The notes: generated by a model from the sequence alone, not told the origin. Shown: positions 27,216 through 48,369, counted from the stretch's first letter. The stretch: DNA of 64,000 bases from Mytilus edulis (GCF_963676685.1 NC_092345.1:105214001-105278000); one strand, 5' to 3'. A program made the numbers and translations.

Positions 27216-27636
27216 ATGGATACCAATCATTCTATATCCTCTCCACACAGTGAACATAATGACACCCATACAGATGCGGGCACAACAGTAAACTTTGACA
27301 ACTTGTATCCTGCCATTGTCCAATGCTTTGCCGTCATTCTCTTCGGTTACATTGCTGGCCGAGCAAATATCATCTCTACCTCACAAGGAAAAGGAATTGG
27401 GACTTTTGTCTCAAAATTTTGTCTTCCTGCTCTGCTTTTCAAAAATATGTGCATTTTGGATTTTTCCATTGTTAACTGGATGTTTTTGATAAGTGTGTTG
27501 ATCTCAAAATCTGTTGTATTTATAATTGTTACAATTGTAACATTAGTTGCCAAGCGACCAGTTAATTATGGATATGCTGGATTGTTTGCTATTTTCTGTA
27601 CACAAAGCAACGACTTTGCTTTAGGATATCCTATAT
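27216..27636 (+). CDS. GPR155: GPR155 coding exon 1
   Basis: Upstream acceptor ttttcttcatttcag ends at 27085 (5' UTR part); ATG 27216; donor T|GTAAGT; phase 1. Confidence 0.93.
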
Positions 27637-30600
27637 GTAAGTACATGTATATATTGGCTCCTACATGTACATAAAGTTATGTTAATGTTGAGAACTTTGT
27701 TTTCAAGAGAAAAAAAAATCAAAGTAAAATATTTAGAGATTAAAATCTCTTGTTTAAAATTTTAAAGAACAACAGAATTTACATAAAATCATACCCTACA
27801 ATGTGAATTTGACATTACATTTATATGTGTAGTAACATGCAGACTACCTGTATTTAAAAAAATGTTTATTCAGTATTAGCATTGTATTAAAAATGTCATT
27901 TACCATGCATGTTGAATTGTCATTACTAACATTTCAAAACTTTTTCTTTTTTTCAGTACAAGCCTTGTACCAAGAAAGCCATCCACAGTACCTGAACTAT
28001 ATCTATCTGATAGCTCCTGTGTCTGTAGTTATTCTCAACCCTATTGGATTTTTATTGTTGGAAATTCAGAAAAAGAGGGAAGGGGATAAAGTAGAAGTGT
28101 CTAAGAGTATAAATGACTCTGGTTCAAAATCTGGGACATGTGCCTTGATACTACATGTGATTAAAGGTGTAATCACGAATCCCATTGTATTCATGACAAT
28201 CATTGGTATTGTTGGAAACTTCATACTACGGAGAAATTTACCTTTGGTTATCTCAGAAATTCTTGATGTTTTAGGTATTATAATTGTTTTTGTTTTATTT
28301 AGAATTAAAACATGTGAATAATATAATAACAAAATGTATTCTTAAAATTTAACATTATTATTTTAGATATATCTATATATAAAGAAGATGTAGTACATGT
28401 ATGAATGCGAATTCGACAACTCTCCATCAGAGACCAAATGACACAGAAACTAACAACTATACATACTATACATACTATAGGTCACTGTACAGCCTTCAAC
28501 AATAAACAAAGGCCTTAACACATAGCCAGCAATATAAGGGGCCGAAATGACAAATGTAAAACAATTCAAAAGAGAAAAATAAATGACCTAATTTATGTAC
28601 AAAAAAAAGTGAATGAAAAACAAATATATGTAAGACAGCAACAAAAAACAACCACTGAATTACAGGTTCCTGACTTGGGACAGCAACATATAGACTGTGG
28701 CAGGTTTGAACTAATTCGAAGGTGCTAACCATCCCCAAAACAGTGGTGCAACAGCACAACAGAAGAACAGACTATGAAACACAATAAACAAATAACTATA
28801 TGCTGTTTTAAATGACAATTATTTATATGTTTCCATGTCTGCTGTACAGATACATGTATATAATTTACTTGTATGTATTATTTACATTTCAATGAAATAT
28901 GATAAAGATATTTCATTTATATTAATGAGATATTAAAAAAATGTTTAACAATACACAGTTCATGTACACATGCATTTTTGTTTTTTCTAGTTTTTAACTG
29001 CAGTTTATAGTGATATCTTTATCTTTACAGGTGATGCTTTCTCTGGAGCAGCTTTATTTTATCTTGGTCTAAGTTTGGTAGGGAAAATATCAGGCCAGAT
29101 GGGTCCACAACTAATTGTACCAGTACTTCTAATAGCAGCTAAAGCGTAAGTATCTAGGATTATGAATAATTAAAACACTTTTACATAGGCCATAACAACA
29201 TTGATTGATTGATTGTTGGTGTTAAATGCCATTTTTGAGCACTTTTAGTTACATCATGGAGGTCAGCTGTTATTGGTATTTTTGAAAGAGTCAGCATACC
29301 TGGAGAGAACCAATTCCTTTGGCAGGAAAAAACATGCAATCTTTGTCAATTAAGATAGTAGTCGTAGGTATCTTCAAATAGCAAGGTTTGAACTCACAAT
29401 CACCTTGTTGACAGGCTAGTGATTACCAAAGATGAACTTGTCAGACAACTAAGGTCCACTGTCAGAATAAGAGGCAGTCTGAAAGTGTCAGCATCATTAA
29501 AAAAATATAGTTACCATGGTTACTGTCATAATGAAAAATTACAGCATTGTTTCCATGACTGATCAAGTGTTCCATATTGTTTTTGGTAATTTTTCTTTTC
29601 AAGTTGAGAATTCAAATATGCTTTACCCTCCAGTTGCAATTTAATGCATATTCAGGATGACTATGAATGCAAAAAGGCACTTTAAATCTACTAATTATCA
29701 CTTATAAATTAAATTAATTATTTATTATATTGATTATTATTCACATTTAAACTATCATATAAAATGTATGTCTAATTAATAGGTTGATTCTGCCATTAAT
29801 AACATGGGAAGTTGTTGGTGCTTTAGAGAAATCCTATAGTGACAAGAATACTACAGAATCATTGAGTATGTTTGGTTTCTTATATGGCACATTCCCAACA
29901 GCGCCATCTGTCTTCTTATATGCCAGCCACTACTCTATTGGACAAGATATTGTAAGTAGCAATTTGAAATATAAAGTGTATTGTAAAAAATATAAGGAGA
30001 CGTGGTATGAATGCCAATAAGACAACTATCCACCAAAGTTGTGAAATTTGTAGAAAATAAAGATACTTGAATTCTCTTTGGTTTTTTTTTATGTATTAAA
30101 TTATTTAAAAACTACACAGGAAAATAAAGTCTATAGATATCTCATTCAAGATAAAGAGAGAAATAAGAATGCAAAACTACAATATGTGTTGAAATAAAAA
30201 CAAGAACCGTGAGATATCATCTATACACATTGATATAAGTGTGTTTAAGATATCTCTATAAAGTAAATGTTGGGCCAAAACTAATTAACACATTATTAAG
30301 GAGAAAACCAAATAAGTTACAATATATTGCAGTAAATATGCAAGTGAAAACCATTCAAATTTGTATTTAATATGATTTTAGGTGGCCACAGGAATGGTAG
30401 CTGGTACATTCTTGTCAGCACCTATCATGTTTGTGTCAGCTAAAATGTTAACAGTTGTAGTGAACAGTGAGCTGGACTATAAAACACTGATGTTAGAGAC
30501 TTCATTTGATACTAGTATCATTAGCTTAGTCTGCAGTGTAAGTAGTAATAAGTATACTTTTTAAATGAAATAAGGTTATAATTAAGGTAGTAGTAAATAA

Positions 30601-33600: not shown

Positions 33601-36600
33601 TAACAACCATTTATTTTTTATTTTCAATGTTTGCAACAATAAATAAACTTCTAGGTTTATTTTGCTGTTTCTTTAAGTTATAATGTATATCTAAACTAAT
33701 TTAGCACATCAACATTTTGCTTCATAAACTTCAAACTGAAATGTGACTGATTATTTGTCACGGCACTTAGTCAATATTATTGAAATACAACTAACAATAA
33801 TATACTAGTTTACTTAAAGGTTTTTGGGATACGATTGCTTTCAATCAATCTGTAGACTTATACTATTGGCTCAGGGCCATGCCCTCACGTCAACCGTTTT
33901 ATTCTAAACATTCAGCAACATCTCAGATTCTTATGATTGTCTTGCTTTAACCCTTTCGCGGCGAGTGTATCCTTCAGGATACACAATGCGCAGGGCGGAT
34001 GTATCCTTGAGGATACATGATGCGCAGGGCGAGTGTATCTTTCAGGATACATAAATATTGTCCCAATGAAAACCGCAATTTTACAGTATTTGCCGTTCTT
34101 AACAGTTGAAATCAATGCTTCAATCAAAATCTACGATACCTGAGGGTCATATTTTAGTTCTTCAGCAGCATTAATAACATCGTGAAAGGTAAATAAATCA
34201 AATCGGAAAATTTTATTTTCTAAAATTAGAACCGGAAACACGTTTTGAGGTCATGTGAGGATTCAAAATGGCTCCTCTCGATAACAAGCAGTGGAAGTAC
34301 GGCTGTTTTCGCTCTTTTAAAGGAGCCCTTCACATTTCATAGGTATTGTTGGATATATAATAATAATAAATGATTCAATATATATTTATAAATAATGAAA
34401 GCGATCATTGGTAGGCCCTTTTCCCCACAAGTAGGCACAAGACAGGTAAGACTTGCATGTAGTTTTAATTTTTTGTCACCGGTTTCGAGGGGAAAAGATA
34501 ATTGGGTTTGGAATGTACGGGAAAATGCACGAAATTAATTAAGGAAGTACAAGTTCGTCTGCTACTATTGCAGTCTAAAAATGTCGTCAGACGAATCTGA
34601 CGGCGACTTTGAAGGGTTTAGTGAAACTGATGTTATAAATGCCGAACAAGAGGTTTTGGCCGCTGAGGAAAGGTTGCGAGTTATTTTGAGTGAACAGGGG
34701 ATAGGGGATGACAGTGATGGAGATCTCAATGAGTCTGAAAATGAGGATGAAGGGGAGGAGGAGGTGCATATTGATGAGAGAGGAGATGGTGGCGATGGAT
34801 GGCATTCTAGGTTTGATATTTATGAAAGGGGTTTACCACATTTATTTAACCCTCGTGGCAATACTGGGCCAAGTCGCGTCATGGGTGCTGAAAAGGAAGT
34901 CTTAGATTTTTGGCAACTCTACATGGGTGATCAATTTCTTGAGTTTCTTATTAACCAAACAGATAGTTATGCCAACTATAACATTCAGCATAGGCCAAAC
35001 GATAACAAAATGCCTTGGAGTATCCCAACTTTACCAGAAATTAAAGCATTTCTTGGTCTAACCTACCAAATGGGAATAAATCGCAAACCATCTACTAAAT
35101 TATATTGGTCAACCGATCCAGTTATGGTCACCCCAATATTTTCATCAACAATGACCAGAGACAGATACACCCAAATATTGCGGTACCTCCATTTCTCTAA
35201 CATTGCAAATGAACCTAGACAAGGAGAACCAAATTATGATCCTTTATATAAAATTAAACCTGTAGTTAACCATTTAAATAATAAATTTGGTTTAGAATAT
35301 ATACCAAAAAGAAATGTCACCATTGATGAGTGTATGGTACCTTTCAAAGGGAGAACATTATTGAAACAATACTTACCAAGTAAACCACATAAATGGGGCG
35401 CAAAGGTTTGGATGCTGGCAGAATCTGCCAACAGCTACATACAATATATAGATGTGTATCCAGGTAGAACAGTTAGAACAGAGGGCAGTCTGGGTTCTTC
35501 GGTGGTAAAGAATTGTTTAGAAGGTGCAAATATTGCAGGTCAGGGCTATCATGTTTATACCGATAACTTTTTTACATCGCCTAACCTTTATTTAGAGTTG
35601 TGGGAGAATTATGACACAGCTGCATGTGGAACAGTCCGTAACACTAGGGCAGGTTTGCCAAAAGATATCATGTGTAAAAAGCCAGTTAATGTTGTAACTC
35701 GTGGAGACCATCAATTCAGGCAAAAAGGTGCTTTGTTAGCGGTATCTTGGAAGGACAAAAAAACTGTATCAGTATTGTCAACAATACACAATGAAAGCAT
35801 TGGTCAAGTTACTCGTTCAGTAAATGTTGACGGCCAATTTGCAAGACAGGAGTTTAATTGCCCATCTGCTATTGTTGACTACACTTGTAATATGGGTGGT
35901 GTTGACAAAGCAGATCAATACATTCAGTATTATTGTTATCACCAGAAAACCTTAAAATGGCCAAAAAAAGTATTTTTTAGTCTACTTGAGATGGTTAAAT
36001 TTAATGCCTACAGATTATTCACATTAAGTCCAAACCATTCTTCAAACCTCACATTCCTTCAGTTTTCTTGTTTGCTGATAAAAGGATTGATCAATGGATA
36101 TTCTGCCGGGGTACGGAGAGGAAGGCCATTACTTGCCCCTGATCAGAGATTGATTCAAAGACACATGCCTACAACTTTAAATAGTAAAGGCAGGTGTCAT
36201 GTCTGTTACATGAGACAGAAGAATGGCAAGCAAGACAATATAAGACAAACTAAATATGGGTGTTCAGTATGTGGCAAACACCTCTGTATGCCTCAATGCT
36301 TCACAATTTACCATACAGAGAAGAATTACTGCTAGACTGACTTTGTGTTCTTTGTTTAATACCGTTTATTGTTCCAGTTTTATTCATGGATTTGTGTTAT
36401 AACTTTTAAACTTTTTTCAAATTGACCTTTAATTAACTGAATAATCATGACAATTGGTGTAAAAAATGTGAGGAAAAGCAAGAGAATTACAAAGAAATAA
36501 TCCTTGAGTGAATGGCACACAATTCATAGGTGAGTCACTGAATGTTGGTTGTTTTTTGTTCTTGTTCGTTTAAATCTTATTGTTGAAAATTTATAAATTA

Positions 36601-39600: not shown

Positions 39601-42600
39601 CCGGGATTGGCTATTTTTAAAGTTGAGTGACTATTCAGATTATTACATTTTGCATATGCAGTTGAATTAGTTTTGAAAATAATACTATCCAGCTGTACCA
39701 GGGCTGCCAAAAATGCGTGAGACTCATGCATGTTCATGCTTATTTGCGGCAGTATCCTTGGATCTATTTTTTTCCCTCTTTGATCTTTTCAATTTTGGCC
39801 AAATCTCAGGCATTTGCTTAATGAAAAGTTGACAGAACTGCTATACATGTGTCAATGAAAACTATGGCAATCATATCCCTCAGAGCATTCTGCTCTTTGA
39901 TTTCCCTTCTTTATTTAAAATTTTATAAGATAGAAATGCACTGTACAAAATAGAAACTTCTAGTATCTCTTTGTTTTCTTGTAAAATATTAACATATTGA
40001 CAGCTTCAGACTACACTGAAATGTAACACAGATTGTCTATATTATGTGAAACAGCTGAGACATGTGTTATAATAACTACATATGTCTCACCTGTGTCATA
40101 TTTTATGATGGGGGAAACAAGAATCAATGAGGAATTAAAATAGATACATATAGTTTTGAGAAATGATATACACTTTAAAATGTGTAGTGAACCAACACTA
40201 ACAGCAGAGACAGAGGAAAAAATATATGACAAGTCTTACTCTCCAATAATGTTTCTTTTCACAAGTCATCCTGTCATTCTTAATTCTATATAGTACTGTT
40301 TACTTTATGTATACATATATTTCTATTTATTAGCTAATTTATAATGTCTGTAGTGAGAGATATTTTATCACACTAGATGCAGTGGTAGAATATAAATGTA
40401 TATATTATTATACAGATTTTATTTGTTTTACAGACCATCTTATCCCTGATAATCTTGACTGTGTGTAGTGCAATAAACATTGTCTGTCTAATATTAAAAC
40501 AAAGGAATTCATCAGCGTATTTGAAATTACGAGAACATAAGAATGGTGACATATTAAACAGTAAGAGAAAGAAAAATGATGGAATGAAGGACGACAGTCG
40601 CTGTAGGTTGTTAGGAAGGAGAGACAGTAATGAAGAAGATTATAGATCTATTAATGACTGTAACAATTGTGATAATTCATGTGAAGGTAAATACTGTTCA
40701 GAAAGGATGTTTAAGATAAGATTTGAATCAATCCAAAAAACAACAATAGATTTAGAAATAGGTTTTACTAATCACTTTGTGCAAAAAATATAGAATACAG
40801 AATAACAATGAAACCTGTAAAAGCATATATTATATTTTCATTTCCAGTCCCATTTCACTGAAGATTTCTTTGTTCTGTTAGATTAAATTAAATAGATTGC
40901 TTAATCAATCGTGAAAGAAAAGATATTTGTTTTTTTGTTTTAGTTCAAAGGTTAGGTTGAAAAGATTTCTGTAGACTGTATAATTTTAAAGATGATACTT
41001 ACACAATGTGATCCTTTGATATAACCTTTAAAGGTAATTTTGAAAGTAAAACTTGAATAATATGCTCTTTTGTATAATTTGTTTGTCTCCTGCCATTATT
41101 TATATTTCTTTATAGGAGTAGGTAGAACCAGTATTGAAGATATAGTGCCTTTCCCTAAAGAGACAGAAAGTCTGATATCTGACACGTCCAGTACTACTAG
41201 TGACAGCCTAACAGAGACGTATGAAGTAGAGCAGTGTGTGTATGGCACTTGTGGTATAGAGCAGAGACGTAGGTGTGCGGGTCTACTCAGGAAGTATAAT
41301 ACATCTGTCGTAGCGATACCGGATGAAGATTCTGTAGGCAGCAATCGATCAAGGAAAGTTAAAGATGATTTCCAAAGTAACAGATTTATGTTGATGTTGG
41401 TTCTCTGTCAAGTTTCTATGTTTATGGTAAGTGTCAAGTTTCTATGTTTATGGTAAGTGTCAAGTCTCTATGTGTATGTTAAGTGTCAAGTTTCTATGTG
41501 TATGGTAAGTGTCAAGTTTCTATGTGTATGGTAAGTGTCAAGTCTCTATGTTTATGGTAAGTGTCAAGTTTCTATGTTTATGGTAAGTGTCAAGTTTCTA
41601 TGTTTATGGTAAGTGTCAAGTTTCTATGTATATGGTAAGTGTCAAGTTTCTATGTTTATGGTAAGTGGCAGCAGTTGATGTTGATGTTGGTTCTCTGTCA
41701 AGTTTCTATGTTTATGGTAAGTGGCAGCAGTTGATGTTGATTCTCTGTCAAGTTTCTATGTTTATGGTAAGTGGCAGCAGTTGGTGTTGATGTTGGTTCT
41801 CTGTCAAGTTTCTATGTTTATGGTAAGTGGAAGCAGTTGATGTTGATGTTGGTACTATGTCAAGTTTCTATGTTTATGGTAAGTGTCAAGTTTCTATGTT
41901 TATGGTAAGTGTCAAGTTTCTATGTATATGGTAAGTGTCAAGTTTCTATGTTTATGGTAAGTGTCAAGTTTCTATGTTTATGGTAAGTGTCAAGTTTCTA
42001 TGTTTATGGTAAGTGGCAGCAGTTGATGTTGATGTTGGTTCTCGGTCAAGTTTCTATGTTTATGGTAAGTGGCAGCAGTTGGCAGGGTTTCCCCTGGGTC
42101 AATTATTTTTTTCGCCACCTCTTTCGCCAAAACAATATATTTTTCGCCACTTGATTATTTTTTTCGCCAAGTGACATAAATATATTTTTCGTTTAAAATT
42201 TACCTTTTTTCTAACCCCCCCCCTTTTTCCCCCACTACTTCCCTTTAAAAAGATGATTTCGCGCCATTGTATCTATGATTATTCTCTCAAACTTATTTTA
42301 GAGTCTACATTTTAATGAATAAACACTAAGCATTTACTTTAAAACAACAGATTTTTTTAACTTAAAAGGGAAAAACATTCATAGTATTTTAAACAGCTTT
42401 TCTAAATGAGGGGGCCACTATACTTTAAATAATAAAGAAGATATAAGTCCTGGAATATAACAAAATTCATGGACATGTTTTGATCATATAATACCATTAT
42501 ACTTCGTTGGGAAAGTTGATTTCTCATTTCATGTGTAGTCATTACATTGAAGGGTTACTCTCATTCGAGGGATTGTTCCCAACCTTTTGGACAGTTTTCT

Positions 42601-45600
42601 TTTCTTGACCATCGTAAATGAAAAAGTTGAGACGTAATTTTATGCTTGAAACACGTGTGTCACTCAAACGACTTTACAGTAGACTCCCTAAGCAATTACC
42701 TATATTAAAGTCAAAGGATAATTAAAGTTTTAAATCAGAGATTTTCTTGCTTTTGAACATTTTTCGTCACAACAACAGCTTTCTTTTCTAAACTATCGTT
42801 AAAAGGAGAGGTGACGTCAAAAGTTAGCTCCAAACACGTGCGTCGCAAAGTGTGAATAAATTATGTATGTGACATTTAGCGGAAGCCATTTAACCATATC
42901 ATTTTTTCAAACAATACAATCAACACCTTTATTAATTAGTCCTTTGTTGTCGATAGCTATAAAATGCAATCAGCTGATTATTGATTTTCTGTCCAAATCT
43001 TATTGAGGTCAAGGTGAACTCCGAGTATTGTCTGATCGAGTAAAGTCCGAGAAACTCGGAAAAAAGTAAATAAACAAGATGTAGGAAATAAATCGTTATA
43101 AATATTTCTTTCGCCAAATTCTTTCACAAATGACAATTTTTTATCGCCACAATTATTATTTTTTCGCAAATTGCGAAAATGGCGACCGCCAGCGGAAACC
43201 CTGGCAGTTGGTGTTGATGTTGGTTCTCTGTCAAGTTTCTATGTTTATGGTAAGTGGCAGCAGTTGATGTTGATGTTGGTTCTATGTCAAGTTTCTATGT
43301 TTATGGTAAGTGGCAACAGTTGATGTTGATGTTGGTACTATGTCAAGTTTCTATGTTTATGGTAAGTGTCAAGTTTCTATGTATATGGTAAGTGTCAAGT
43401 TTCTATGTTTATGGTAAGTGGCAGCAGTTGATGTTGATGTTGGTTCTCTGTTAAGTTTCTATGTTTATGGTAAGTGGCAGCAATTAAGGTTGATGTTGGT
43501 TCTCTGTCAAGTTTCTATGTTTATGGTAAGTGGCAGCAGTTGGTGTTGATGTTGGTTCTCTGTCAAGTTTCTATATTTATGGTAAGTGGCAGCAGTTGAT
43601 GTTGGTACTATGTCAAGTTTCTATGTTTATGGTAAGTGTCAAGTTTCTATGTTTATGGTAAGTGTCAAGTTTCTATGTATATGGTAAGTGTCAAGTTTCT
43701 ATGTTTATGGTAAGTGTCAAGTTTCTATGTTTATGGTAAGTGTCAGCAGTTGATGTTGATGTTGGTTCTTTGTCAAGTTTCTATGTTTATGGTAAGTGTC
43801 AAATTTCTATGTTTATGGTAAGTGTCAAGTTTCTATGTTTATGGTAAGTGTCAGCAGTTGATGTTGATGTTGGTTCTCTGTCAAGTTTCTATGTTTATGG
43901 TAAGTGTCAAGTTTCTATATTTATGGTAAGTGTCAAGTTTCTATGTTTATGGTAAGTGTCAGCAGTTGATGTTGATGTTGGTTCTCTGTCAAGTTTCAAT
44001 GTTTATGGTAAGTGTCAGCAGTTGATGTTGATGTTGGTTCTCTGTCAAGTTTCTATGTTTATGGTAAGTGTCAGCAGTTGATGTTGATGTTGGTTCTCTG
44101 TCAAGTTTCTATGTTTATGGTAAGTGGCAGCAGTTGATGTTGGTTCTCTGTCAAGTTTCTGTGTTTATGGTAAGTGTCAAGTTTCTATGTTTATGGTAAG
44201 TGTCAAGTTTCTATGTTTATGGTAAGTGGCAGCAGTTGATGTTGATGTTGGTTCTCTGTCAAGTTTCTATGTTTATGGTAAGTGGCAGCAATTGATGTTG
44301 ATGTTGGTTCTCTGTCAAGTTTCTATGTTTATGGTAAGTGTCAGCAGTTGATGTTGATGTTGGTTCTCTGTCAAGTTTCAATGTTTATGGTAAGTGTCAG
44401 CAGTTGATGTTGATGTTGGTTCTCTGTCAAGTTTCTATGTTTATGGTAAGTGGAAGCAGTTGATGTTGATGTTGGTTCTCTGTCAAGTTTCTATGTTTAT
44501 GGTAAGTGGCAGCAGTTGATGTTGATGTTGGTTCTCTGTCAAGGTTCTGTGTTTATGGTAAGTGGCAGCAGTTGATGTTGATGTTGGTTCTCTGTCAAGT
44601 TTCTGTGTTTATGGTAAGTCAGCAATTATTTGTAGTCCGCTTGAGATTTCCAGATACGTCTGTTCTGTTTTGGGGGGCTTTGGCATAAGAGACAAAATAC
44701 TGGATTGACAATGACAAGATAGAAAATATGGTGTTTTTTTTACTATTTCAGTAAATATCAGCTTCTCTTCTGATATCTCAATTCACATCAATTTCAATTT
44801 TTCACCAAATCCAATTTTAACAGAGTGCATGCTAGAACAAAGAAAATGTTGTCATGTTTGTTGTAACAAATATTATTAATATATTAATATTTTATTTTTT
44901 GTAGGGACTTTTTTTGTGTACATGGAGACTGTTTAATAAAGTTACAACAGGAACATACGTAGAAGTAGAATTCCTTGACGGTGTGATGAACTATGGTCAG
45001 GTAAGTCTGTTTGATAGTTTGCTGTCTCATGGTCATGTAGCCTCTCTTTTAATTCATATAAAATTCATGTTTCATACATTAGTTAACTACTGATTCTACA
45101 GATGAACTGAGTGTTATATACATGTACAATTTTTCTCTAGTCAAGACTTTGTCTTTCTTTTTCAATGATTGCAAAAAAGATGATTTCTTTTAATGTGATT
45201 TCATCTGGCATGATTGCTCTTTTTAAGATGTCATGCTAACATATTTAGAGGAACACCAAAAAAATGAACTCAAACAAACCAGTCCACATGTTGATTATAA
45301 AAAGACAACCAATTGTTTTAAAAATGTTTAAAAAGACTAAAAGTTAGAAAAGTTCACTTATATTGTAAATTGAGAAATGTCATATTGAAAAACAAGGAAA
45401 ATGAGACAGGATTATTATTACATTGGTTAGAATTTTTGTTTCTGAATGCAGTATTTGTATGCAGTGTTTCATAAAAATACATGAAATAAATCTTTCATAT
45501 ATGCTTATTTTTTGTACAGTTGCATTAACATCTACATGCACAAATTACAAAAAATTTGAGCATCAAGTTGGTATTTATAAAAGTATTAAACTATTAAAAA

Positions 45601-48369
45601 AAAAGTTCCATGGACAAAACCATTTTTTTTTCCAGGGATTTATTGAACAAAACTGCTTTATTTTGTAGGGATTTATTGAACAAAACTACTATATTTTGTA
45701 GGGATTTATTGAACAAAACTACTTCATTTTGCAGGGATTTTTTTAACAAAACTACTATATTTTGTAGGGATTTATTGAACAAAACTATTTTATTTTGTAG
45801 GGATTTATTATATTTGCGATATTTGGGTTTGATACCAGATTAATATTCTTGCCATGTATAAAAAGGTATGTACAATGTTATTCTCTAATAGATATTTTAT
45901 ACTGGTGGTCAGACACAATAGTTCTAGTTTAGGAAAGTACAATGATGGTTTAGTATATAAAAAATCTGTTCAATCTTTACATGGTGGAAGGGGAAAATAG
46001 TACTTTTGTAGCTGGAATTTTTTGTGTGAATAATACCTTGAACTGATAATCAGTTTATTTCTATTGAAAATTGGTAAATGAGACTTAAATTAAACCTGGT
46101 CAAAAATTAATTTTCCCATATGCCATAACCAATTATTTCGAAAATTGTTTTCCCTTTAATTTCTTTTAAGACAAGGATTTAAGATCCATTACAAGAACCA
46201 GTTCAGAAAATATTGTTTAAGAACTATCGACAATTTATGAAACTTTCAATAGGGGAAATCCCTCCTCTGAAATTAAAACAAAACGGTATAAGAGGTGGTG
46301 AATTTGCGATTTCTGGCATGTTACACTCCTTTTAGGTTGGGACAAGTGAGCTTTTTATCAGACTACTTCTTATAGGACTTATTCCCATACAAAAGAGGAT
46401 TTTACCCATTTTCTATTGACCTGAAACATATAGATAATCTTTTTTATAATCCAGCCCATACAATATTCCTTTATAATGGTTAATTTACTTTTAAAATGCA
46501 TTGAAGATGTGAAACTTATAAATGATTTTAAAATTATACCACGTTAGTCAATATGTATATAGATGTAATGGTTATATTGTAGCTTGGTCAACTTTAAACG
46601 TAAATTGTTAAAAAGGTAACCGTCTTATATGTTGTAATGCATGGCATGTTGTAATCGATGATATGGCAGTGTTATCTTGGGTTCAAATGTACTTTAAATT
46701 GCATGTTAATTTGTTCAGTGCTCCTATGATGGGATTTATTTGTATTCAATGTGGCTAAAATTATCAGAGGGACAAATATTTTTCCTTCATCTATCAATAT
46801 ATATATGTGTACCTAGATATGTTTTAAAACCAGAGATTGCAGATGTTCAATTTTATATATTTTTTTTTAATTGTTCTTGTTTGAATGAAATGCTAGTTAG
46901 TCATCCTATATAGTATAGCACTTTCATAGAACATGGCATTTCTAAAAGATGTTATCACTTGATATTCCTAAATGTTATCATATGACACTCCTACAAAACA
47001 AGTTCCTTTATATTATAATGGTCCTGGGGGCCCTGGTAACCGAGTAGTCTTAAGTAATACAACTACTGTATTACAAGCCAGTCAACACCAAGGTTGTGGG
47101 TTTGAATTTCAAACATGGTAGGTGAGCTTGACTCTAATCTTAATTGACTACAATTGTCAGTTTTCCAAAGGTAGGTTGTTCTATCCTGGCACTGGGATTC
47201 TTCCACCAATAAAACCTGACCACCATGAAGTAGCACAATAGTGGCGTTAAAACACCAATCAAACATTTGACACTCCTACAACAAATTATCACATGACACT
47301 CCTACAACAAATTATCACATGACACTCCTACAACAATTTTTAAAGAATTCTTTCTATCAGTAATCTATACCAGTGGTTAGTTATGCAGATAAATTGAACC
47401 AACATGTTATGTTTGTCTATAATTACATTGATACTAAATTAAGTAAGATATTTAATTATATAAGTATTTTCTATGAATAAAAACTCATTTTCATTTCATT
47501 ATATGAATATCTGAATTTATAGAATAACTGATTTCTTGATTGTGTGTATATTACAGATGGCGTAAACTTGTTTATGGTGTAGAAATTGTGACACTTCCAG
47601 ATTCCTCCGAACTTGATGAAGAAACAATGCATTTATGTGAACAGTTTAAAAAATACCACAAAAATAATTGTTCTAAAGCTATTGTTAAAGATCTAAAGTA
47701 AGTACTGTTTGCTATTAATTAGGACATTCAAAAGCAAAACCCATTGATGTTTTGGGAATATTTCCTACTTAACACAGTTATTCACACAGTAATTATTCCT
47801 GGTGATTTGGTTATCCATGTAAAACAAAATGTTATAAATCAAAACTTATAGAATAAATCAAAAAAAAAAGAAAAGATATGATGAATTAAAAAATTAATGA
47901 CAAAAGAATTTGAATTTTAAATGATTAAATTATTAGTTTAAAACAAATTGTTACTTTTTGTTTTTTTATGCATTATAAGTTTTTGTGAATATGAATGATA
48001 GGAGATGTTGGGTATTCATTAATCTGACAGCAACCCAAATGACATAAAAATTTAACAAACATTTAGTATTATGAAGACAATGAATAGTAATTCACGTATT
48101 ATTAATGACATAGATGTTTTTTTCACAGAAATATAACAAAGATTTATTATAATTTCAGATATAGGTTAAAAGAATATAAACAAGTATTTACAGGAACCGA
48201 CATGTGTGATTGGTTATTAGAAGTTGGTTTAGCCCATGATAGGGGAGAGGCCATAGAATATGGACGTACTCTTGTTACAGGACACATTGTTAGTCATGTG
48301 ACCAAGGAACATCATTTTCATGACCTGCCATATTTTTACAGTTTTATTGAAGAAGAGGAATATGATTGA
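27216..48369 (+). CDS. GPR155: GPR155/LYCHOS (lysosomal cholesterol sensor: permease-like TM domain + GPCR-like TM domain + C-terminal DEP domain), 14 coding exons, 881 aa
   Basis: join(27216..27636,27957..28274,29031..29145,29783..29951,30382..30537,32161..32244,32691..32902,33494..33587,40434..40686,41116..41426,44905..45000,45801..45865,47557..47697,48159..48369). All introns are GT-AG, phases are consistent, total 2646 nt. Motifs recognised: LYPAIVQCFAVILFGYIAG, FCLPALLFKNM, FCTQSNDFALGYPI, LYGTFPTAPSV, YVEVEFLDGVMNYGQG, and DEP domain FTGTDMCDWLLEVGLAHDRGEAIEYG...HHFHD. Confidence 0.95.
27957..28274 (+). CDS. GPR155: GPR155 coding exon 2
   Basis: tttttttcag|TA CAA GCC; QALYQESHPQYLNYIYLIAPVS..NPIVFMTIIG; donor G|GTATTA. 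Confidence 0.92.
29031..29145 (+). CDS. GPR155: GPR155 coding exon 3
   Basis: ctttacag|GT GAT GCT; DAFSGAALFYLGLSLVGK..LIAAK; donor GC|GTAAGT. Not in the ORF track. Confidence 0.92.
29783..29951 (+). CDS. GPR155: GPR155 coding exon 4
   Basis: taatag|G TTG ATT; LILPL..FLYGTFPTAPSVFLYASHY; donor ATT|GTAAGT. Confidence 0.92.
30382..30537 (+). CDS. GPR155: GPR155 coding exon 5
   Basis: ttttag|GTG GCC; VATGMVAGTFLSAPIMFVSA; donor AGT|GTAAGT. Confidence 0.92.
31445..31962 (+). mobile_element. HINE-like element (second family) with ~2 internal repeats
   Basis: ttttatacgacc.. / ..ggtcgtataaa sub-terminal inverted repeat, GTC microsatellite, internal duplication. Confidence 0.65.
32161..32244 (+). 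CDS. GPR155: GPR155 coding exon 6
   Basis: ttgacag|ATA TGG; IWVVVLMFLSGRYKKMPHQFLLCFCVAH; donor CAT|GTAAGT. Confidence 0.9.
32251..32392. repeat. 33-37-bp tandem repeat (4 units) starting directly after the exon-6 donor
   Basis: ACTTATAATAACGTTTT(ATGA)TAGAGAACACTGT x4. Confidence 0.9.
32691..32902 (+). CDS. GPR155: GPR155 coding exon 7
   Basis: ttaatag|GTG TTT; hydrophobic TM segments; donor GG|GTTGGT chosen to match the phase of the next exon. Confidence 0.85.
33494..33587 (+). CDS. GPR155: GPR155 coding exon 8
   Basis: cctttgtag|G ATA CCT; GIPMFCTGLLIML..IDPSFHYGADQ; donor CAG|GTAGGA. Confidence 0.9.
33961..34052 (+). repeat. Three ~34-bp sub-terminal direct repeats of the piggyBac, each with palindrome TGTATCCT-NN-AGGATACA
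   Basis: gcgagtgtatccttcaggatacacaatgcgcagg x3, read directly. Confidence 0.85.
34581..36335 (+). CDS. piggyBac transposase (PGBD4-like, DDE_Tnp_1_7), intact, 584 aa
   Basis: Acidic N-terminus; DDD triad in TIDECMVPFKG, YTDNFF, MGGVDKADQ; KPHKWG; C-terminal cysteine-rich domain RCHVC..CSVCGKHLC..CF..YH; no stops or frameshifts. Confidence 0.96.
   Translation: MSSDESDGDFEGFSETDVINAEQEVLAAEERLRVILSEQGIGDDSDGDLNESENEDEGEEEVHIDERGDGGDGWHSRFDIYERGLPHLFNPRGNTGPSRVMGAEKEVLDFWQLYMGDQFLEFLINQTDSYANYNIQHRPNDNKMPWSIPTLPEIKAFLGLTYQMGINRKPSTKLYWSTDPVMVTPIFSSTMTRDRYTQILRYLHFSNIANEPRQGEPNYDPLYKIKPVVNHLNNKFGLEYIPKRNVTIDECMVPFKGRTLLKQYLPSKPHKWGAKVWMLAESANSYIQYIDVYPGRTVRTEGSLGSSVVKNCLEGANIAGQGYHVYTDNFFTSPNLYLELWENYDTAACGTVRNTRAGLPKDIMCKKPVNVVTRGDHQFRQKGALLAVSWKDKKTVSVLSTIHNESIGQVTRSVNVDGQFARQEFNCPSAIVDYTCNMGGVDKADQYIQYYCYHQKTLKWPKKVFFSLLEMVKFNAYRLFTLSPNHSSNLTFLQFSCLLIKGLINGYSAGVRRGRPLLAPDQRLIQRHMPTTLNSKGRCHVCYMRQKNGKQDNIRQTKYGCSVCGKHLCMPQCFTIYHTEKNYC
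38037..38194. mobile_element. Tc1/mariner-like MITE
   Basis: Perfect 15-bp TIR CACCTTATCGCTATT flanked by TA on both sides. Confidence 0.8.
38201..38765. mobile_element. Non-autonomous Kolobok-like element
   Basis: TTAA TSD on both sides; TIR GGAGGCTCGCGGGTATAA / GGGGGCTCGCGGGTCTAA; purine termini point to Kolobok rather than piggyBac. Confidence 0.82.
40434..40686 (+). CDS. GPR155: GPR155 coding exon 9
   Basis: gttttacag|ACC ATC; TM helix followed by a cytosolic loop; donor G|GTAAAT. Confidence 0.88.
41116..41426 (+). CDS. GPR155: GPR155 coding exon 10
   Basis: ctttatag|GA GTA; SIEDI..Cys-containing loop..RFMLMLVLCQVSMFM; donor ATG|GTAAGT, which is the first unit of the donor array. Confidence 0.88.
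41407..44620 (+). repeat. Tandem array of the GPR155 exon-10 3' end plus 5' splice site (26-bp and 56-bp units, ~50 GTAAGT donors)
   Basis: Short unit CAAGTTTCTATGTTTATG|GTAAGTGT; long unit adds CAGCAGTTGATGTTGATGTTGGTTCTCTGT; interrupted by a hAT element. Confidence 0.97.
42083..43203. mobile_element. Non-autonomous hAT-type element inserted into the donor array
   Basis: TIR CAGGGTTTCCCCTGG / CAGGGTTTCCGCTGG; 8-bp TSD GCAGTTGG (42075..42082, 43204..43211); sub-terminal TTCGCCA repeats. Confidence 0.92.
44905..45000 (+). CDS. GPR155: GPR155 coding exon 11
   Basis: ttttttgtag|GGA CTT; GLFLCTWRLFNKVTTGTYVEVEFLDGVMNYGQ; donor CAG|GTAAGT. Confidence 0.92.
45612..45809 (+). repeat. Six 33-bp tandem copies of the GPR155 exon-12 3' splice site
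   Basis: AG|GGATTT with AG ending at 45635, 45668, 45701, 45734, 45767 and 45800. Confidence 0.95.
45801..45865 (+). CDS. GPR155: GPR155 coding exon 12
   Basis: ttttgtag|GGA TTT ATT; GFIIFAIFGFDTRLIFLPCIK; donor AG|GTATGT. Confidence 0.9.
47025..47265 (+). mobile_element. tRNA-derived SINE-like repeat
   Basis: GGGGCC..TGGTAACCGAGT (A-box-like), GGTTTGAAT (B-box-like), ..CCACCAATAAAAC..AAAACACCAATCAA tail; related copies at ~29200..29450(-) and 24770..24890(+). Confidence 0.55.
47557..47697 (+). CDS. GPR155: GPR155 coding exon 13
   Basis: ttacag|A TGG CGT; WRKLVYG..LCEQFKKYHKNNCSKAIVKD; donor AA|GTAAGT. Confidence 0.9.
48159..48369 (+). CDS. GPR155: GPR155 last coding exon (DEP domain)
   Basis: aatttcag|A TAT AGG; VFTGTDMCDWLLEVGLAHDRGEAIEYGRTLVTGHIVSHVTKEHHFHDLPYFYSF; stop TGA 48367..48369. 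Confidence 0.93.

Follow-up and report, generated by a model that had tools for sequence, protein, structure and literature searches.

A 52-unit tandem array of an exon end and its 5' splice site in intron 10 of the Mytilus edulis GPR155/LYCHOS gene

How an intron comes to carry about fifty copies of its own 5' splice site, which of these copies is used, and whether the surplus serves the gene are the questions raised by a locus of the mussel Mytilus edulis (GCF_963676685.1 NC_092345.1:105214001-105278000). The window, that is, the whole stretch of 64,000 nucleotides (nt) considered here, corresponds to G000:C2:105214001-105278000 of a 1.37-Gb genome and contains a gene on its plus strand, the bivalve GPR155/LYCHOS; positions are counted from the first letter of the window except where another sequence is named. 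In intron 10 of this gene, the end of coding exon 10 and its GTAAGT donor are reiterated in a tandem array of 52 units. We consider it probable that this array is a lineage-specific minisatellite that arose from the exon 10/intron 10 junction, that its first donor is the one used, and that the array is tolerated and essentially neutral.

The host gene was recognized from two Pfam domains, Mem_trans (PF03547, 27312-27650) and DEP (PF00610, 48154-48345, 61 bits), both on the plus strand. A profile-free search with the Mem_trans exon as query returned full-length relatives, the best of which, P0004 (941 amino acids), carries Mem_trans plus DEP and belongs to a 90% cluster that includes a 'lysosomal cholesterol signaling protein-like [Argopecten irradians]', i.e., LYCHOS/GPR155. 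With P0004 as the tblastn query, 14 colinear coding segments were located in the window, among them the first homology-supported coding exon, where Mem_trans starts (27258..27662, plus strand), and the DEP-domain exon (48154..48345, plus strand). By its two domains on the same strand and its colinearity with a named orthologue, the host gene is identified as the bivalve GPR155/LYCHOS. The tenth homology-supported coding exon (41116..41426, plus strand) ends in phase 0 with the peptide ..FMLMLVLCQVSMFM and is supported by its translation, by tblastn of P0004 and P0012, and by contigs of the RNA runs X15 and X17. Coding exon 11 (44905..45000, plus strand; 96 nt, phase 0 to phase 0, GLFLCTWRLF...NYGQ) is supported by tblastn, by its sequence and by contigs of the same two runs, and is followed by its own GGTAAGT-type donor at 45000. 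Exons were handled singly by reference, and the frame effects given below were read from separate translations, not from a joined spliced model.

When the sequence is split at each donor and the first unit, which is embedded in the exon, is counted, positions 41407-44619 resolve into 52 head-to-tail units of 26, 50 or 56 nt. Tandem Repeats Finder reports a period of 26 at 41406-42015 and a period of 56 at 43204-44619. Writing S for the 26-nt, L for the 56-nt and l for the 50-nt unit, the units follow one another as SSSSSSSSSS L l L L SSSSS L [insert] L L SS L L L l SSSS L SS L SS L L L l SS LLLLLLL. Unit 1 (41407-41432) spans the real end of exon 10 and the authentic donor, GTAAGT at 41427..41432 (plus strand), hereafter donor 1. 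The left part of the array (41407..42082, plus strand) consists of units 1-20 (10 S, L l L L, 5 S, L) and the left piece of an L unit that is split by a transposon; the right part (43204..44619, plus strand) consists of the right piece of that unit and 31 further units, and ends with GGTAAGT, after which unique intron sequence begins. The heptamer GGTAAGT is intact in 51 of the 52 units, the sole mutated array donor being GTTAAGT at 41478..41484 (plus strand), and the array donors fit the U1 consensus at 8 of 9 positions. In the entire 64-kb window the heptamer occurs 52 times, 51 of them in the array and the remaining one at the exon 11 donor. In 35 of the 52 units the 26-nt core matches the consensus, itself equal to the exon sequence, at every position; 20 of the 1352 cells differ. 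A reading of the window made earlier from the sequence alone (the sequence-only reading) had described a ~50-copy array at this junction with very few donor mutations and a length of ~2.1 kb without its hAT insert; our count agrees with it, and the length without the insert is about 2.08 kb.

The composition of the units relates them directly to the exon-intron junction. An S unit consists of the last 18-19 nt of exon 10 followed by GTAAGTG(T), and an L unit of the last 42 nt of exon 10 (41385-41426, plus strand) with one mismatch, GTAAGT, and ~8 nt more of the intron (GGCAGCAG or GTCAGCAG). The unit had been described as the last 18-40 nt of the exon plus GTAAGT; exon end and donor stand as described, while the lengths are corrected to 18-19 nt of exon for S and, for L, 42 nt of exon with ~14 nt of intron. 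The S unit equals a T-type L unit minus the 30 nt between two GTCA tetramers, and the l unit is an L unit without one TGATGT hexamer. A motif of several units, made of an L with GGTACTATG, an S, an S with TATATG and more S units, recurs three times. The intron sequence after the last unit (GTAAGT CAGCAATTATTTG..) resembles the exon sequence just 5' of the unit (..CAGATTTATGTTG..). The strand that carries the array is rich in G and T, with a GC skew of +0.47, and both properties are possible contributors to its instability. Intron 10 measures 3478 nt, of which the array takes 2072 nt, the transposon 1121 nt and unique sequence 285 nt, so that array plus transposon make up 92% of it. The unique sequence (44620..44904, plus strand), the sole non-repeated part of the intron, holds both the polypyrimidine tract and, at 44903-44904, the acceptor AG.

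The element that splits the L unit occupies 42083..43203 (1121 bp) and was characterized as a non-autonomous DNA transposon by inverted repeat search and copy number. It has imperfect terminal inverted repeats starting with CAGGG (CAGGGTTTCCCC.. and ..GGAAACCCTG) and is bounded by an 8-bp target duplication, GCAGTTGG, at 42075-42082 and 43204-43211; both features fit a hAT-like element, in agreement with the hAT label proposed earlier. A first look across the genome gives more than 2000 candidate copies with 85-97% identity. At 42082/3 and 43203/4, the ends of the element, contigs derived from its other copies are interrupted, and depth there is ~1000 times that of single-copy sequence. AATAAA motifs are present in the insert.

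Which of the donors is used was examined by mapping contigs from four runs (three of RNA, one of DNA) to positions 41000-45100. In record 9 of X17 (412 nt), bases 1-229 correspond to 41197-41425 and bases 230-327 to 44904-45001; the exons are joined at donor 1, and the boundary G can be assigned to either exon (41425/6 to 44904/5). The X15 contigs cover exons 10 and 11, and the exon 11 contig has 28 more bases on its exon 10 side, consistent with donor 1. Donors other than donor 1 were seen in no contig of the three RNA runs, these being assembled contigs, in which rare isoforms are lost. Donor 1 is the donor used in RNA. At the protein level, splicing via donor 1 gives ..QVSMFM/GLFLCTW (the slash marks the junction), compared with ..QVSMIV/GIFLCSW in the orthologue. 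Since the scallop protein reads ..FMILLIYNQVSMIV/GIFLCSWRLM.. at the matching place, donor 1 (GT at 41427) together with the acceptor at 44904 yields the orthologue-colinear product. Donor 2 adds 26 nt, after which exon 11 is read from its second base and a stop follows after 18 codons. Any transcript using donor 3 or a later one ends at the in-frame TAA at 41454..41456 (plus strand; open reading frame 41070..41456), which is made by donor 2's own G/GTAAGT. The frameshift and the TAA had both been foreseen in the sequence-only reading and are seen in the translations; its claim that only the exon-proximal donor gives full-length protein agrees with the orthologue-colinear product and with the RNA contig. 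Nothing points to a protein change in GPR155.

Read-through of the first unit (41427-41453) gives VSVKFLCLW, which is similar to the true start of exon 11, GLFLCTW (44905-44925), and because of this likeness tblastn runs the exon 10 alignment on into the intron. The likeness is probably due to chance (~10 of 15 nt in common), and it could mislead gene predictors.

The question of where the array came from was approached through relatives. The last 14 residues encoded by exon 10 align gap-free to the scallop LYCHOS-like protein and to P0012. A search with the exon 10 translation led to short predicted proteins of relatives, ~72% identical over a poorly conserved linker. In four of them (P0151-P0154) the exon-end peptide FMLMLVLCQVSMFM is identical to that of the window, with QSNRFMLMLVLCQVSMFM as the last exon residues, and the proteins read through the donor (V) into RLINIWFGLW.., compared with VSVKFLCLW in the array; judged from this predicted-protein read-through, the array is not present at the junction of P0151-P0154. 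A more distant relative, P0156, has SMFI and then VS, retaining a GTAAGT-like start. Since the exon-end peptide is common to relatives without an array at the junction, the junction appears to have seeded the array, as had been suggested from the sequence alone, and the alignment to the scallop orthologue agrees with this. The comparison supports an ancestral exon end and donor and an array specific to the lineage of the window. When metagenome contigs were searched with P0152, 37 loci were obtained, in which only residues ~96-125 (the read-through) match, and the orthologous exon-intron junction DNA was not found among them.

Separately, the intron read-through tail of the relatives (..WFGLWCLMPLSTIFQFNKLISLLW) matches dozens of metagenome contigs of a single project (JYMV01..., Ga0256844..., L026-L062), so that a dispersed repeat evidently lies directly after the donor in the genome that encodes P0152.

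From the anatomy of the units, we propose the following history. A 56-nt segment, made of the last 42 nt of the exon and the first ~14 nt of the intron, would have been duplicated in tandem, the first duplication probably occurring by slippage or unequal exchange between the short similar stretches, CAGATTTATGTTG in the exon and CAGCAATTATTTG in the intron, that lie ~56 nt apart. A 30-nt deletion between the two GTCA tetramers of a T-type L unit would have produced the 26-nt unit, and the loss of one TGATGT hexamer the 50-nt unit. The threefold recurrence of the multi-unit motif indicates that blocks of several units would then have been re-duplicated, and the hAT-like element would later have inserted in one long unit. 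As 285 nt of intron 10 are unique, the ancestral intron would have measured ~300 nt, and array plus transposon would have enlarged it to 3478 nt. Because the exon copy stands first, donor 1 still gives the normal protein, and the ~50 downstream copies would be spliced out with the intron; where donor 2 or a later one is occasionally used, the resulting transcripts would contain premature stop codons. That donor 1 is chosen is best explained by the rule found by experiment for intron 7 (IVS7) of human F7, namely that the most upstream of identical consecutive donors is taken, by 5'-to-3' scanning or exon definition.

That rule comes from a class of repeats that was already described, although the sequence-only reading did not recognize one. 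Borensztajn et al. 2006 (PMC1557585) reported human minisatellites whose first monomer spans an exon-intron boundary, the class comprising F7, IFI6 (6-16), CBS, LMNB2 and PDGFA. The array studied here has the defining features of exon-intron-junction-spanning minisatellites, that is, a tandem unit of the 10-100 bp type, a first monomer with the real exon end and donor, a reiterated donor, and the most upstream donor in the mRNA, and is a large new member of the class. In F7 IVS7, a 37-bp variable number tandem repeat (VNTR) is present in 5-9 copies and only the most upstream site is used; with 50 constructs it was found that the pseudo-sites can function but are outcompeted by the most upstream one, a behaviour termed 'oriented scanning' (PMC1557585). 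The mussel array resembles F7 in that the first monomer spans the boundary, the authentic donor is followed by identical pseudo-donors, and only the most upstream is used. In F7, however, the pseudo-sites become functional once the upstream ones are destroyed, whereas the mussel array is known from sequence and RNA contigs. F7 also has one unit size, 4 nt of exon and a weak donor (TGG/GTGGGT) in its 5-9 copies, in contrast to 52 copies, three unit sizes, 18-42 nt of exon, a near-consensus donor and a transposon inside the array in a mollusc.

The remaining members are summarized in PMC1557585. According to it, intron 2 of IFI6/6-16 has 25 pseudo-sites, the two nearest the authentic donor being used as well (Turri 1995), and exon 13/intron 13 of CBS has a 31-bp VNTR of 15-20 repeats with two pseudo-sites used (Yang 2000, Lievers 2001). 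As summarized there, these two share with the mussel array a junction that is reiterated many times, and differ from it in that the two nearest pseudo-sites are used constitutively, while in the mussel donor 1 alone is seen in contigs and donor 2 is out of frame. For LMNB2 the same source gives 10-15 repeats of 100 bp with only the authentic site used, and for intron 4 of PDGFA 16-18 repeats of 81 bp. In this type, as described, the intron consists mostly of the repeat and splicing is confined to the authentic donor, and the mussel array, which together with its transposon fills 92% of 3478 nt, is similar in this respect; the difference lies in the 10-18 copies of longer units and in the vertebrate hosts.

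Arrays of this kind were also found elsewhere in the mussel genome. Ten GGTAAGT-periodic arrays were sampled on C1. In eight of them an open frame of 31-93 codons leads directly up to the array, and in five the frame has 56 codons or more; judged by the baseline of the window itself, five or more such cases among ten have p=0.005. Pfam domains above the cut-off extend up to the first donor in two of six tested frames. One, Peptidase_C1, belongs to a 47-nt unit array of at least 28 copies that starts at the exon end of a papain-family protease (G000:C1:7120939-7122354, L076), and the other, 7tm_1, to a 30-nt unit array that starts at the exon end of a rhodopsin-type G protein-coupled receptor (G000:C1:1871448-1871685, L084). 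Across the genome, three GGTAAGT spaced 15-45 nt apart are matched 1671 times vs 1860 times for the reversed heptamer, with no raw excess, so this crude count by itself lends no support to a special donor-amplifying process. Taken together, junction-spanning arrays are common in this genome, and a roughly estimated random expectation suggests at most a few-fold excess.

Also on C1, at G000:C1:2834436-2834595, a 34-nt unit, GTAAGT...TTTTTTATTACAG, is repeated in tandem; each unit combines a donor with a pyrimidine tract and an acceptor, and the locus has the appearance of a complete mini-intron in head-to-tail copies.

Outside the window, the sole other genomic match to the GPR155 array is a ~9.6-kb satellite of ~165 copies with period 56, on the minus strand at G000:C1:104787560-104797190 (L015 7587-10000, L016 1-7188). 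The satellite unit can be aligned collinearly with the L unit at ~66-70% identity, giving a gapped score of 61 that none of 2000 shuffles reaches (maximum 44); against the C1 unit, the exon end alone reaches 35, compared with a maximum of 27 among 8656 other 56-mers of the window. In 1.37 Gb, the combined motif CAGTTGATG..TGTCAA..TTTCTATGT, drawn from both units, is present only in the GPR155 array and the C1 satellite. Neither flank homology nor an exon-10-like peptide was found when the C1 satellite locus was compared with the GPR155 locus. The C1 unit also shows ~75% collinearity to a 56-nt family present at several loci on C11 (z 14-15). The C11 family was considered as a relative of the GPR155 array and rejected, having no similarity to the L unit (z 1-2). 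As an observation on C11 itself, at ~1.19, 1.91, 2.66, 3.21, 3.78, 4.29 and 4.48 Mb (L018-L025) there are at least 7 copies of a >3-kb element with a common internal layout, spaced ~0.2-0.7 Mb apart and filled with degenerate 56-nt repeats of the 8-mers TGTCAATG/TGTTGATG.

Three other accounts of the array were weighed against its birth at the junction. It is extremely improbable that an assembly error created the array or set its length. Assemblies are prone to error in long near-identical tandem arrays, and contig depth is zero in most array bins of the runs compared; nevertheless, the units are non-identical and follow an ordered S/L/l pattern with shared variants, and a transposon with a clean 8-bp target duplication lies inside one unit. 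Short-read contigs of the DNA run X5, which has another organism label, break exactly at both borders of the array: one contig identical to 41000-41417 ends at the repeat start, a second ends ~34 nt past the array (~44653), and a third runs from a unit into the 3' flank. This is the expected behaviour of a short-read graph at a tandem array, which short-read contigs collapse, and the array also occurs outside the individual that was assembled. A second account, by which the array would locally represent a 56-nt satellite family (C1, C11) of greater age that colonized the intron and gained its exon likeness by later exchange, can appeal to the period, collinearity and score of the C1 satellite, to its relation to the multi-locus C11 family, and to the restriction of the combined motif to the two loci. 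We regard it as very unlikely, given that the strongest similarity lies in the exon-derived part (35 vs a maximum of 27), which is itself ancestral coding sequence, and that units matching the exon over 42 nt must be copies of the exon. The lack of similarity between the L unit and the C11 family and of flank homology between the C1 and GPR155 loci argues in the same direction, and choosing the best match in a minisatellite-rich genome favours arrays of equal period.

The third account is functional. Intronic U1 small nuclear ribonucleoprotein (snRNP) sites take part in telescripting, and decoy 5' splice sites are known as well, both functions being defined by U1 inhibition and premature polyadenylation read-outs. 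The mussel array shares with them many U1-complementary sites in an intron, its copies being known from sequence alone. As a decoy field, the ~50 U1 sites could tune GPR155 through nonsense-mediated decay (NMD), or they could protect the enlarged intron by telescripting, in which case they would cover polyadenylation-like signals in the transposon, where AATAAA motifs occur. The sequence-only reading had likewise proposed a U1 landing pad that could tune GPR155 by NMD or suppress premature polyadenylation, or be a tolerated scar, and had looked to donor positions outlasting the rest of the unit as its check. In favour of a function are the intact donors (51 of 52, with an 8/9 match to the U1 consensus), the premature stop that follows from every non-first donor, and the use, in IFI6 and CBS as summarized in PMC1557585, of the two pseudo-sites nearest the authentic donor. 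Among distinct variants, one falls in the 7 donor positions and nine in the other 19 core positions (binomial p=0.20), which is no significant excess of donor conservation; by differing cells, the count of 1 donor vs 19 other is nominally significant (p=0.016), but the cells are not independent because variants are copied along with units. The whole unit is ~98.5% uniform, which fits youth or homogenization rather than selection on the donor only. No array is present at the junction in relatives that keep the exon-end peptide, the only RNA junction seen is that of donor 1, and similar arrays stand at unrelated genes of this genome, which points to a mutational process rather than to gene-specific regulation. 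As RNA, the initial 291 nt form a fold whose stability does not exceed that of shuffles (z=0.01), so that masking of the pseudo-donors by structure is unsupported. We found no support for a decoy, NMD-tuning or telescripting role, and consider the functional account unlikely.

Birth at the junction, with a tolerated and essentially neutral array, is therefore the reading that we prefer, and several observations weigh against it. The likeness of the C1 satellite to the L unit is unaccounted for by a history of junction duplication, and by the cell count the donor seems to have changed less than the remainder of the unit. All of the RNA evidence comes from assembled contigs, and donors 2 onward may see minor use; X17, moreover, is under a different organism label and 96.5% identical in the exon, from a genome that may lack the array. 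When two strong donors compete in vitro, the one nearest the 3' splice site is often favoured, so the exclusive use of donor 1 among 51 perfect sites is not trivially expected. As for the C1 array, it may be a descendant of the junction repeat, or a chimera, or a coincidence that comes from picking the best equal-period match in a minisatellite-rich genome. A bolder version, in which the 56-nt junction unit seeded the C1 satellite and the genome, more broadly, makes junction-anchored arrays above the random rate by a transcription- or splicing-coupled process, is doubtful, although somewhat less so than the three accounts above; if true, a satellite family would have been born from the junction of a coding exon and a 5' splice site.

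As an unusually large natural case, the locus offers a series of 51 identical near-consensus 5' splice sites at intervals of 26-56 nt, led by the correct one. It is a ready non-vertebrate test of donor choice, in which upstream-first scanning or exon definition can be set against proximity to the 3' splice site. It also illustrates a proposed route of intron growth, from ~300 nt to 3.5 kb, by duplication of the intron's own junction plus one transposon. With similar arrays at other genes, the species could serve for a genome-wide study of the birth and lifetime of such arrays and of the leak of unproductive isoforms.

Two further features of the gene were recorded. The long intron between GPR155 coding exons 8 and 9 holds an intact open reading frame of 584 amino acids at 34581-36335 (plus strand), with a piggyBac-type transposase domain (DDE_Tnp_1_7, E=5e-76) plus a zinc finger. 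In the intron that follows exon 11, just 5' of coding exon 12, there is a separate 33-nt tandem repeat at 45614-45809, with 5.9 copies and 87% matches.

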